Assembly: GCA_964106645.2 (NCBI GenBank)
Contig: OZ067040.1
Direction: 5' to 3' (one strand)
DNA length: 64,000 nucleotides
From: Podarcis pityusensis
Taxonomy: Eukaryota
A model generated the notes under the pieces. That model was given only the letters and a program-made list of their open reading frames with translations. It was not told the origin of the DNA and did no database searches. Below, one piece after another: positions 53,001-59,000 of this stretch; the stretch's first letter is position 1, and every line of letters begins with the position of its first letter. The position numbers and the translations under genes are program-made.

Positions 53001-56000
53001 ACCTTCATGGGGAACATAGTCACTCGCTCAGGGGTGTCGATGTTGTACCACACGCAGAGGCTGTTCCGGTTCTGGGCCACCACGACGTCGCTCCCGGGGA
53101 CCCACTGCACGTAGGAGCAGTAGCTCAGGATGGTGGTCTTGGTGGCGCTCTCAATGTCGTAGAGATGCAGCTGGGGGGGCGGGGGAGAAGAGGCGCAGGA
53201 TCAGCGGAGGTGGGGAGGGAGGCAAGTCCGCCGGCCTTCGTGCCTTCAGCCCCCCCTCCACCCCTGGCCTCCTGCTCACTTTCATCTTCTTGTCCCGGAA
53301 GAGCAACTTGTGCCCGGTCTCATTCAGCTCCAGCCAGTCAATCTTGCTGTCGTGGCTGACGGTGCCAATATTGTAGCTGCCCACGAGGTCCACTGAGAAG
53401 AGGCAGAGAAGAGGCAGGTGGCTCAGGAGAGGCGCCTGGGGCAGCCTGAGGCACAGCCAGGGGGATGGGGAGTTTTGGGAAGGGGGTCCTCGCTCACCTG
53501 TCGCTATTGTTTTGATGTCCACCAAGTAAGCCAGACGCTTGTTTTCCTCCATTCCCTGCTGCCTCCTTTCATTGATGCGGACACTGGGAGAGAGAGAGAA
53601 AGGACATAATACATGGGGGGGGGCACTGCTCCCTCTTCTTCTTTCCCATGGGAGAAAGAGGGCCTCCTCACTCACCTGATGAGATGGGGGTTCATAAACT
53701 CAGTGCGCACAGAACCCAGGATCTCATTGCTCCCATACTCCACCAGGGTCAGCTCCCCTGCGTTGAATATCATGCAGACCTAGAGAAAAGGAGAGATTGG
53801 GAGAAGGAAGAAAGGAGCCACCCCTGCCCCACAAAAGAGGCCCTGTGGTGTAGGGACAAACCCCCAGAGCAACCCCGGGGCTACCCTCCCCCAATACCGC
53901 TGCTTTCCTTGCAGACCGGCCAGAACCTTCATCCTTGGAAGGAAGGAAGGAAAAGGCTTCTTCTTGTACTACTGCAGGCCCTGCCAACTTACATTCTCAT
54001 TGTCGAAGAAAAACTTCTCATTCCCGCCAGATCCCTGCCAGGCGACCTGAGAGAGACGGGGGAGAGGGCAGGTGCCCATGAGCTCCAGGCCAGCCACACC
54101 ACCCTCAACAAGGCTGCCCCATCCCCCAGCCCACTCCCCGCCAAACAGACCCAGAGACCCCCACTGCCCTCCCGCCAAGCTGCCCCACTTGTTTGCAGTC
54201 CTCTGGGCTCTCTGGGAAGACCCCAGGAGCCCGTTGGGAGGCTGCCAAATTCCTCCCCGCAGGCGCAGGATGCTCACCTCGCTGAGCTTGGTAGAGCTGA
54301 GGTCCCCCAGGAGCAGCGTGTCGGAGGTGTGAGCCACAAGGTAGCGCTCCTTCCCCAGGATCTTCACCTCGTCAATCTCATAGCCATAGTGGGATTTCAA
54401 CACGACCCGCATCCCGGTGGAGAGGTTCTTCACAATCACCTAGGAGAGGGGGATGAGTGACACAACTCGGATCCTCTCCTTCCTCCCCTGGCACACGCAA
54501 GGGCAGCTTGCAGCGGAAGGAGATGGCCAGTCCCTTCCGCGCTCTGCAGCCCAGAGGAAAGCAAAGCTGGCTGACAGGAGGGGCAGAGCAGCTCTTGGGC
54601 CAGGAGGAGGCAGCCTCCTTCTGAGGAGACAGGGGCTTCCACAAGTTTCCTGTTTCGATTATTGCATGTTTATAAAAGATGCTGATGGAAGAAATTGCAT
54701 TTCATGTTTGCGTGCGTGGTTGTTTTCTTAAAGAAGATGTATGTTCCAAAATATTTGGTTGAGGACCTTCAAGGATAAACAAGTAGAAAAGGTGGAATTT
54801 AATAATAATGATAATGATAATGATAATGGTGATAATCATCATCATCATCATCATCATCATCATCATTTTATTATTTACACCCCGCTCACCTGGCTGGGTT
54901 TCCCCTGCCACTCTGGGCAGCTTCCAAGATATACAAAAGCATGATCAAAACATCAGTCCTTAAAAGCTTCCCTCAGCAGGGCTGCTTTCAGGTCGTTCTT
55001 TATTTCCTTGGCACCACAGGGAGGGCACCACTACTGGAAAGGCCTTCTGCCTGGTTCCCTGTAACTTTGCTTCTTGCGGTGAGGAAACCAGCAGAAGACC
55101 CTCAGAGCTGGACCTCAGTGCCCGGGCTGAGCGATGGGGGTGGGATACTGGGTCAAGGCCGTTTAGGGCTTTAAATTTGAGTCATATGGGAAAACACCGA
55201 GCAGAAGAAGATTCCTGTGGCACCTTAAAAATTATCACCCTGGTGGTGGCAGGAGCTTCTGTGGGCTCCAGCCTGGAAAAGCAGCAGGGGCTGGAAGTGA
55301 GGCTCTTCCCTTGCTCCAATGAGCGAGAGGGAGGATGGCCAAATTAAGCCGGAGGGGCTATAATCCATTCAGAAAGATTTACTAGAACTACATCAGCAGA
55401 AGTCTAGTGAATGCATTTTAGTTTATGAAAGAGAGAATCAATATATCAAAAAGGAAAACTACGTGCACATAATACATAAATGCATCTTGAGGGGAGAATC
55501 TAAGAAATGATTAAGTAGCTATTACATGCCAGGTTCACAACATACAAGATTATAATGAATCCTACAATGGCCCAGCTAAACTCTGCCAGCCCTCTCATTA
55601 ATAAGCTGACTCCATGATCCCAGCTGCCCTAATTAGTTTAATTAGCTGCCTTTGAGTGTAAGAGAAGAACATAGCTACCAGTCTAGAGACTCCCGGGGTC
55701 TTAGATGTGTGCCACAGGATCCAGAAAAATCCAAACACAGTATTAGTCGAGGCAAAAAGCAAAAAAAGTAATGCTTTAGAAAGAAAATAGTGAAGCCTGA
55801 ACCAACTGAAATTTGGTGAGAGAAAAGAACAAATAGGAATGCAGAAAATCTGGGATGACAAAGGAGAATCAGGAAAAAAACTGCACTGTGCTACAACCTG
55901 AGACTTCCTCAGAAAGGGTTAGGGTTAGGGTTAGACACAAGATCTACCCACTCTGGAAGAATGGCAGATGAAGCTGATGGACTATATGGAATTGGCAGAA

Positions 56001-59000
56001 ATGACTGGCAGAATCCGAGACCAGGGAGAAGAGTCGGTGGAAGAAGATTGGAAGAAGTTCAAAGATTATCTACAGAAATATTGTAAAATTAATGAATGTT
56101 AGAATGATGTTGGATAGAAATTAAGTGGTTTCCAGCTGTAATGCTTTAAAGGAATATGAAAAATGGGTTGTTAAGAGATAAAAATCTAAAGTTACTATTT
56201 TAAGACCAAAGATTAGGATAAATAAAGAGGGTAAGGATTTGCTGAACCAACAAACTGAACTGGAATACAAAAAAGGGAGGTATGAGGAGGTCCGGGAAAC
56301 AAGCTAAGGAAAAATAAGCAAAAGAAAATCTGAGTGTTTTTAATCATTTTTATTTTGTTTGTTTTTTTCTTTTTCATTTTTTATTGTAATGTTTTAAAAA
56401 CCCTAATAAATATCTTATATAAAAAAAAGAGACTTCCTCAGAAAGGGGTGGCTTTTGAACAAAGCTGAACTGGCGTCTTTCAGAGATTTGGAGCCCAGCT
56501 GGCCCTTTCTTGGAGTTCTTGCTTTGATCTTGCTCCTCCCTCCGTTTGGGAAATGGCTCTTACTCATTTTCTTTGAGTCAACCTTCTTGGGCCTGAATAT
56601 TTGGCTCATGAACAGTTTTGGATGGACACAGCTTTTATTTTCCCGAAAATTGGCTTGGACCTCACTAACTGTATTTAATACAATTTTTCGGAACAGAGTG
56701 TAGCCTCTGCAGTTTGCTCATCACGCTTTCGGCCCCTTGGCAAATCAAGGACCTTGTTTGCATCTTGGTCTGCAGCAAAACTGACCTTTGCTTAGAGAAC
56801 ATTTTCTTACACTTATCCTGAGTAAGAGCAGCAAGGAGTAAAAGGAGCAGGACAGGCCTTCCTCTGGGCAACCTGCCCTCCCTCCAGCAGCAACCATGTG
56901 CTCTTCAGCAGCCCCCTCCCCCTTCTTCCACCCCACAGTCCATGGCCAGAGCCCACCACTGCAGCCATAAGTCACTACCCTACGGCCGCAACACATACCT
57001 GGCTGGGCCCCACGTAGGTCATCTCAAACTTATTCTTGTAAATGCTCCTGCGCAGGCAGCAGTCAAACTGCTCCACTCCGCCACAGAGGGTGCCCTGCAG
57101 GAACAAAAGCCTTTTCAGCCCACAACCCCTCAGACCCTTCCTGCCCACCAACCCAAGACGCCCTGCAGTGAAGCTGCATCAAGCGGGCATGATCCGGCAG
57201 AGAAGGCGGCCTGCCCCACTCACCGCACAGAGCCGCGAGCCGTCCCGCTTCCAGGCCAAGGCAGTGATGGTGTAGAGGTGAGGGATCTCCTTGGGCTTGG
57301 CTTCCTCCCAGGCACTCCGGCGGGGGCTCCAGTTCAGCACCCTCAGCCTGGGGAAATCAAGGGGGCAGGCAGTGAGGGTCCGAGGGGGAACAGGCCTGCC
57401 CCCAGCGCAGCGCCCACCCCCCCGTCCCGGCCCTCCGGCTCAGCCGCACCTGTCAAAGCTGCCGATGACCACGGACTGGCCCCCTGGGCTGGCTGCCGCC
57501 ACCGTGAACTCCTTCTCGGAAGAGTCCCGGCTGTAGTCGAAGGTCTGGATGACGTGGCCCTCCTTCCCGTAGGCCACCATCTTTTTGTCGCAGCCGGCGG
57601 CCACAATGCTGTTTGAGGCCCAGGCCATGGCGTAGGGGGGGCAGGGGTGGATCACCAGCTTGCCCTGTCCAGCACCAGGAGCAAGAAACAGGGAGCAATG
57701 AAAAGCCGGAGAGAGAAAACGATCTGCTCCCCCTGGTGCTCAAGCCAGCTGAGACCCCTAGGCAGCGGCAAACTCTCTGCTCTCCCCACCTAGCACAGCC
57801 AGGGGATGGGGTTGCAACACCTGACGTTTTGCTTCTCTGAATGCCAGGGGAGGCCTGCACTGCACCACGAGGTGCAGGTGGGAAACCAGGAGGGCAGGAA
57901 AGACTTTAGTGGGATAATAGGCATTGCTGGAGGGTGGCGGGGGCAGCCTTGCTGGGACTAATCTCCCCCTGCTTCATTTAAAGGGCTGCCTGAGTGCTTG
58001 GCACAAGCAAAGAGCACACAAGGGCTTTGAAACGAGTGTGAGACAGCCACCCCCATGAGCTCCCTGCTGAAAGCAGCCTCTCCATCCACCTCAACAAAAC
58101 GGCTGCTTGGAAATAATTCTCCCCTCTCACCAACACCTCCCCAAACCGAAGGTGCTCTCTGGGGCCCTTCCATGCCTCAGAGGCAGCCAGTGTGACCAGT
58201 CTCCTTAACTGGAGGTTTTTAAGCAGAGGTTGGGTGCATTTTGTGCATTGCAGGAGGGTGGCCTAGATGACCCTTGGGGTTCCTCTCCCTCTATAATTCT
58301 ATGACTCCCCCTGCCCTGGTCTCCCCGCAGGCCTGGTCTAGGTGGGGTGGGGGGCGGGGCTCCTGAGAGAAGAGAGCCTGCCTGCACCTGTGACTCCCCA
58401 GAGCCTTCATCGTCAAAGAAGTAGCGCACGATGGTTCCGTCTGCGTGTCCAGAGAGGATTCCCTTCCCTGAGATGCTGTGCGGCAGCAGAAGGAGGAAGA
58501 CAAAAGGAGGTCATCAGGGAGCCCCAGCGGGGTCTTGCCCTCAGGTCAGAGAGACCTGAGGAGGGGGGGTCAGGGCTGCCCCGTGGGGCTTCCTCTCCCT
58601 CCCACACTCACTTGGAGGCCAAGGAGACGACGTAGGAGTCTGTCCCATAAATGGTGGATGATTTGTTGGTCTTGGTGTTGGCCAGGCGAACCTGCCAGAG
58701 AGAAAAGTCTGGTCAGCCTTTGATGTGCAAGGGAGCAAAGCGAGAGGAGAGGCACCTCCAAAACCCCACACTCCCTCCAGGGCAACAAACCAGGGAGAAG
58801 ACGGAGCCCCAGGAGACGTCAGGGCCAGATGGAGGGACTCCTCTGCAGGAGGCTCCAGGCGGGCTCTTTCCCACTCCAAGAGCTAAGAGGTGGAAGCCTG
58901 GTGGCCAGGCCACTCCTACCTTGCCCTCAACAAGCCCAAAGACGATGGTGTTTTCCTCCGGCCACAGCAAGCAAGTGACAGCGCTCTGGTGGGGAACAGG

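Follow-up and report, generated by a model that had tools for sequence, protein, structure and literature searches.

Telomerase-made interstitial telomeric sequences (ITSs) at breaks and extra nucleotides at the 5' junctions of long interspersed elements (LINEs) are each known, but their combination at one L1 junction was not found reported, no description of telomeric repeats at an L1 5' junction having been encountered in the literature searched (coverage was incomplete, and a prior description is possible). This article considers such a junction, at which a perfect telomeric tract separates a 5'-truncated L1 from its upstream target-site duplication (TSD), in a 64,000-nucleotide stretch of the lizard Podarcis pityusensis (contig OZ067040.1, GenBank assembly GCA_964106645.2), where it lies in an intron of IFT172. 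That whole stretch is referred to as the window, and positions given without a prefix are positions in it. Mechanistically the locus resembles a short ITS made by telomerase at a break, and in formal terms it is an endonuclease-dependent L1 insertion with extra nucleotides at its 5' junction. Extension of the upstream 3' end by telomerase is the best single explanation for the tract and a probable one, although it is unproven from one locus.

Short ITSs at double-strand breaks have been surveyed in rodents and primates (Nergadze et al., 2007, PMC2246262; Santagostino et al., 2020, PMC7215372). In these surveys, exact hexamers appear in one step by comparison with an empty orthologue, and 1–8 nucleotides (nt) of the break's 3' end lie in register with the repeat, cases with AGGG being documented in rodents (PMC2246262). 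The present locus is alike on both counts, the register here involving the 4 nt AGGG. Target duplications accompany 4.6% of the ITSs in rodents and 16% in primates. The present tract differs in that its substrate would be an intermediate of target-primed reverse transcription (TPRT) and in abutting an L1 that was inserted with it between a single pair of TSDs; no class of ITS joined to a co-inserted L1 was found in the available parts of either survey, and the query used there was four units, a threshold below which this tract falls. TERC-ITS loci also combine telomeric repeats with another reverse-transcribed sequence inserted in one step (PMC8537989, PMC2246262). Unlike them, the present locus has an L1 as the partner, and a TERC-ITS is ruled out, no TERC-derived letters standing beside the repeats and no Rfam hit being found in the window. 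That transposon-triggered breaks feed ITS formation in squamates has been raised as loose speculation (PMC4529230); this suggestion and the ITSs that have target duplications are the closest precedents encountered in the literature searched.

The extra nucleotides described at LINE 5' junctions (Yamaguchi et al., 2014, PMC4245944) are likewise of foreign origin and separate the upstream TSD from a 5'-truncated LINE, the join having been made through annealing; their occurrence is host-dependent. Those nucleotides are largely copied from the flanks, whereas the filler considered here consists of a perfect telomeric repeat, for which no flank match exceeds 6 nt; the text of that paper contains no discussion of TTAGGG or telomerase. 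U6/L1 chimeras and the “extra template” junctions of R2 (PMC11371274) similarly carry foreign sense sequence on the 5' side of a truncated element, all between one pair of TSDs, but the foreign part of the present junction is 14–16 nt of pure repeat with no recognizable full small RNA. In the neotelomeres formed at Cas9 breaks (Kinzig et al., 10.1101/2022.10.31.514589), telomerase acts, as it would here, on a 3' end, not itself telomeric, that a nuclease complex has extruded. That system differs in being experimental, in human cells and dependent upon Cas9 rather than ORF2p, and retrotransposition intermediates are not among the substrates discussed for it. In the endonuclease-independent L1 insertion at telomeres that Morrish et al. 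reportedly described in 2007, the telomere's 3' end is said to prime the cDNA, with the repeats abutting the poly(A) end and no TSD. The present L1 also stands beside telomeric repeats, but these are at its 5' end and its TSD is normal and perfect, which rules out a telomere-primed (endonuclease-independent) origin.

Anatomy of the Insertion

The insertion consists of a 494-nt 3' piece of an L1 (55935–56428), with its sense strand on the plus strand, enclosed by a perfect pair of 19-bp TSDs on that strand at 55900–55918 and 56429–56447. Between the upstream TSD and the L1 is a perfect 16-nt telomeric tract, (TTAGGG)2-TTAG, at 55919–55934, which is G-rich on the sense strand of the L1. The order of TSD, telomeric tract, truncated L1, poly(A) and TSD had been proposed in an earlier annotation made from the letters alone (hereafter the original prediction) and was confirmed, as was the continuation of the target after the downstream TSD, given there as GTG and found to read GTGG. 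The L1 piece comprises, all on the plus strand, the last 55 codons of ORF2 with the stop codon (55935–56102), for which there are ORF2 homologues in Podarcis and an RVT_1 domain in a longer copy, a 3' untranslated region (UTR; 56103–56420) with AATAAA at 56405–56410, and an A8 tail (56421–56428). With its L1 homology, a TSD within the range of 7–20 bp, an A tail and 5' truncation, the insertion has the attributes of TPRT, and all bases between the TSDs can be assigned to repeat, L1 or A tail. The cut site is CCT/GAGA, as against the human TT/AAAA.

Homology to the longer L1 copy (30728–32903), as determined by BLAST, begins at 55933 and amounts to 91% over 498 nt, so that 14 nt of the tract are strictly foreign, while its terminal AG (55933–55934) doubles as L1 sequence and constitutes a 2-nt microhomology. 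Of the 16 bases that the original prediction assigned to neither the target nor the element, 14 are thus unambiguous, and the last AG is the microhomology to which it had already pointed. The sequence TTAGGGTTAG matched once in the window, at the tract, even with one mismatch allowed, and the probability of the exact 14-mer given the window composition is 2.0e-9, or 2.4e-8 over 12 phases and strands. At the other side of the tract, the upstream TSD ends in AGGG, in register with the repeat as had been predicted, which provides a 4-nt pairing. Within the 3' UTR of the element, AACCCTAA at 56399–56406 matches 8 nt of the filler in reverse complement.

The L1 Family and Its Other Copies

The longer copy of the same family in the window (30710–32921, plus strand) has its own 18-bp TSD and no filler, and serves as the reference for the L1 at the junction. 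Its ORF2 has matches of up to 93% among the L1 proteins of Podarcis and contains the RVT_1 domain, and at the junction position it reads TTGGAAG-ACACAAG (32402–32415), exactly as the original prediction had it. This copy is itself 5'-truncated (2.2 kb), with ORF2 split into two frames near 31200 and FAND at the catalytic motif of the reverse transcriptase (RT). Five family copies carry (T/C/A)GCAAAGTATTGGAAG at the position of the filler, which is ordinary ORF2 sequence with no tract. Inside ORF2, the filler would exchange an AAG codon for an in-frame TAG; a coding donor therefore cannot carry the tract, since it would place a stop codon in the ORF2 frame.

Four other truncated copies of the family have TSDs of 17, 17, 17, and 18 bp and no filler, and their cut sites are all pyrimidine/purine, one of them also being CCT/GAGA. 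The copies of this lizard family in the window and in the sequences L001, L002, and L006 display degenerate pyrimidine/purine cuts rather than TT/AAAA, and TSDs of 17–19 bp. Because a 19-bp TSD and a pyrimidine/purine site are typical of the family, the tract starts at a normal second-strand cut. Telomeric filler was absent from all five other L1 5' junctions that could be resolved in the 228 kb surveyed (four truncated and one of full-length type), and the only other telomeric match of at least 11 nt in those 228 kb is 12 nt long. That match, on the minus strand at about L006:18610–18640, is isolated, with no evident retroelement or TSD.

A related full-length element in P. lilfordi (L002:18357) begins with GAACTTCC-GGGTTAG, and GGGTTAG is absent from the two other L1 5' ends that were checked. 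The region L002:18339–21089 is a 2.7-kb L1-type element with an intact 5' end, in which GGGTTAG occurs, and an 18-bp TSD, which holds only the 3' part of ORF2 (it is either internally deleted or bipartite) and has a duplicated segment of the 3' UTR. Elsewhere in P. lilfordi (L003:9239–15147), two head-to-tail L1 pieces are bounded by a 39-bp direct repeat, which is too long for a TSD.

Empty and Filled Alleles within Podarcis

Across IFT172, the window is 97–98% identical to P. lilfordi and 90–96% identical to P. raffonei. The independent assembly of P. lilfordi has a filled site in which the tract is identical letter for letter, and its L1 differs from that of the window by about 1%, the same as the flanks. 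The P. raffonei assembly has the ancestral, empty site, where GTGG comes immediately after a single 19-mer copy and the tract is absent, and a contig of run X19, from a further organism, shows the same empty join (55887 to 56429). Given the identical filled site in P. lilfordi and the empty sites in P. raffonei and X19, the insertion is heritable and predates the divergence from P. lilfordi. Each of the four filled samples has the tract, no allele with the L1 alone being present among them, and the locus serves cleanly as a presence/absence marker among Podarcis lizards.

Logan contigs of runs X1 and X18, which bear the same organism label and come from different studies, cross 55300–55962 with one mismatch and no gaps; the comparison itemizes differences only outside 55908–55941, and X1 or X18 may be the source sample of the window. 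The locus contigs of three runs all stop exactly at 55962, which is 30 nt past the start of L1 homology and, for an assembly built on 31-letter words, is where the path becomes shared with other copies. By the logic of de Bruijn graph assembly, the junction is inferred to be single-copy in the genome, with no second locus that has the join of tract and L1. From the empty allele without the tract, the single-copy junction and the tract-free family copies, it follows that the tract and the L1 arrived at one cut.

Telomerase as the Probable Source of the Tract

Since the strand that continues from the TSD into the sense strand of the L1 is the G-rich one, whatever made the tract copied either a C-rich template, extending the target 3' end, or a G-rich one, extending the cDNA. 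In the case of telomerase, the G-rich sense strand means that the primer was the 3' end of the target and not the cDNA; capping of the cDNA end by telomerase is ruled out, as this would place the C-rich strand on the sense side. Early nicking of the top strand and unzipping by ORF2p are known from the literature. Telomerase acts at non-telomeric 3' ends with a 3' overhang requirement of about 5 nt, and interstitial insertions are the expected outcome when its short products undergo end joining (10.1101/2022.10.31.514589). On a 10- or 11-nt template of the vertebrate type, the best pairing of the TSD end is 4 bp (AGGG) with TTAG added first, and the predicted product ladder of 4, 10, and 16 nt matches the tract (4+6+6). 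Only 2.0% of window positions offer a 4-nt end capable of such pairing. A 2026 preprint (PMC13252387) reports that human telomerase pauses mostly at GGGTTA and argues that templates of the fish/reptile type keep a GGTTAG register; both fit the tract.

We consider it reasonably likely that telomerase extended the top-strand 3' end left by TPRT. The event would have started out like any other endonuclease-dependent L1 insertion, taking place in an ancestor shared by the window species and P. lilfordi, either in its germline or in the early embryo. ORF2p would nick the bottom strand, the cDNA would start on the poly(A) tail, and a nick in the top strand 19 nt away would leave an upstream end terminating in AGGG-3', such that the upstream TSD's 3' end (55918) would mark this nick and be the putative primer. 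Before this end was joined to the 5'-truncated cDNA, the telomerase RNA template would pair with AGGG and TTAG would be added, after which the enzyme would translocate, add two more GGTTAG units and dissociate. The extended end would then anneal to the cDNA via AG/CT, and second-strand synthesis would seal the insertion, trapping a 16-nt interstitial telomeric tract between the TSD and the L1. That TERT was the maker, that the steps occurred in this order, and that this was the number of passes is what we infer.

Several considerations weigh against this account. It concerns a single locus, which was singled out from a very large scan that favors rare coincidences, and the five tract-free junctions are far too small a sample for a rate. 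The tract is short, with 2.3–2.7 added units (3.3 when the TSD end is included), and contains no bases read through from TERC. The template used for comparison is a generic vertebrate type taken from published papers and may not be that of the lacertid TERC. The 4-nt register is also expected from microhomology capture or tandem duplication and is hence not independent support. The terminal phase, GGTTAG, which had been proposed as a sign of telomerase, is compatible with it but is weak evidence, because AG is shared with the L1 and 14, 15, or 16 added nt would all fit. The number of units also appears able to change after insertion. A contig of run X2, from a related organism, has 315 letters on 309 positions, and by elimination its 6 extra letters fall in 55908–55941 and are probably one more telomeric unit; the array may thus vary between lineages. 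Later slippage may have distorted the original figure of about three rounds.

Alternative Explanations

The principal alternative is that existing telomeric nucleic acid was captured in the same insertion event. The L1 RT would jump at the AG microhomology to telomeric repeat-containing RNA (TERRA) or to a telomeric single-stranded 3' end and copy 14–20 nt, and the end of the cDNA would anneal to the AGGG of the target; in variants of this route, ORF2p would use the top strand as its primer and C-rich telomeric RNA as its template (twin priming in trans), or end joining would patch in a telomeric oligonucleotide. Capture accounts equally well for the strand, for the microhomologies of 4 nt with the target and 2 nt with the L1, and for the perfection of the repeats. 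For this reason, the bias in strand and register that the original prediction had put forward as a genome-wide test cannot separate telomerase from capture of G-rich telomeric RNA or single-stranded DNA by L1 RT or repair, given that capture predicts the same strand and the same microhomology; extension of the 3' overhang by telomerase, as originally claimed, stands as the best single explanation and is not established against capture. The geometry also fits a template-switch chimera with TERRA, although a pure 16-nt repeat is not assignable to any transcript. With the R2 protein, 5' junctions that result from a jump to non-coding RNA or a fusion with it have been documented, the RNA being almost always U6 (PMC11371274), and U6/L1 chimeras and endonuclease-independent L1 insertion at telomeres are both cited in PMC2246262. 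However, a rare template would be required in trans, together with a very short copy by a processive RT, and no description of TERRA/L1 chimeras was found in the literature searched. The tract also lacks variant repeats or subtelomeric letters, though 16 nt is too short for any to be expected. Capture is regarded as rather unlikely. Local slippage, which is considered a little less likely still, supposes that a tiny filler (TT, or GGGTTAG copied from the L1) gave AGGGTT-AG by chance and was then expanded, either by re-priming of L1 RT or polymerase theta or by later 6-nt tandem duplications. Candidate templates are AACCCTAA in the 3' UTR of the element, an 8-nt match on the usable strand of a kind found in 2.4% of resampled sequences (7.3% on either strand), and the GGGTTAG that follows GAACTTCC at the 5' end of the related subfamily (L002:18357). 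LINE 5' extra nucleotides are often copied from flanking sequence (PMC4245944), and the array seems able to gain a unit, as in X2. Set against this, the 3'-UTR template sits within five consecutive A, so that each round of copying would need to end after exactly two T in the absence of a boundary element. GGGTTAG is missing from two other L1 5' ends, and the target flanks hold no filler match above 6 nt. Random hexamer triplication would yield the telomeric class about once in 670 (there are 670 primitive hexamer classes), and two duplications from 1.3 units would be needed before the P. lilfordi split, with 16 nt kept in both lineages since.

A sequence of two events, in which a clean L1 insertion was followed by a double-strand break at its 5' junction and repair with a telomeric insertion, possibly trimming the L1, appears very improbable. 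Short ITS insertions with deletions are common in mammals (Table 1 of PMC2246262), and ITSs inside LINEs have been reported (PMC8537989), but this would require a break precisely where an intact TSD of family-typical length ends, and the tract is present in all four filled samples. The original prediction had itself raised the prospects that the tract pre-existed at the target, was carried by the donor or lacked read support; barring a lost donor copy, an origin of any of these kinds can be considered refuted. A pre-existing tract is ruled out by the empty alleles of P. raffonei and X19, a donor-carried tract by the five tract-free family copies and the TAG in the ORF2 frame, and an assembly artefact by the presence of the junction in the contigs of X1 and X18 and in the P. 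lilfordi assembly.

Host Gene and Surroundings

The L1 is inserted in a 2.5-kb intron of IFT172 (54442–56997, minus strand), the coding range of which extends over about 38011–61564 on the minus strand; the gene was located with one exon from the window and then with a bat IFT172 database entry as the query. The L1 is antisense to IFT172, and the locus is intronic and probably neutral, with the tract probably having no function. The target is an AT-rich stretch of the intron (flanks about 55350–56900) with long stop-free frames on the minus strand at 55601–55897 and 56448–56717, for which no match was found in Pfam or Atlas. These flanks are also matched in part, with skips (56661 to 56786), by a second contig, about 2 kb long, which suggests an older low-copy repeat or a retrocopy. 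A gene for a PTB-domain protein lies head-to-head with IFT172 at about 61565–63644 and is also called in P. lilfordi (L005:1–1086).

Implications for L1 Integration and Telomeric Sequences

The locus bears on the questions of how L1 5' ends become joined and of which host enzymes come into contact with the intermediate. If the tract is a telomerase footprint, the upstream 3' end would have been free, and long-lived enough for an enzyme that was not recruited to it, and L1 insertion would be a concrete source of the breaks that lie behind short ITSs. Fillers of fewer than four units, which ITS surveys skip, become cheaply testable genome-wide, and the matter is relevant to retroelement-based gene insertion in telomerase-positive cells. 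That telomerase recurrently engages the top-strand 3' end exposed by L1 ORF2p during TPRT is a more tentative proposition, possible but on present evidence doubtful. Were it the case, a small, measurable class of LINE insertions with in-register telomeric fillers would be expected in telomerase-positive germlines, short ITSs that have target duplications could be accounted for by events that were aborted, and over-extension would now and then convert retrotransposition into chromosome healing and terminal deletion.

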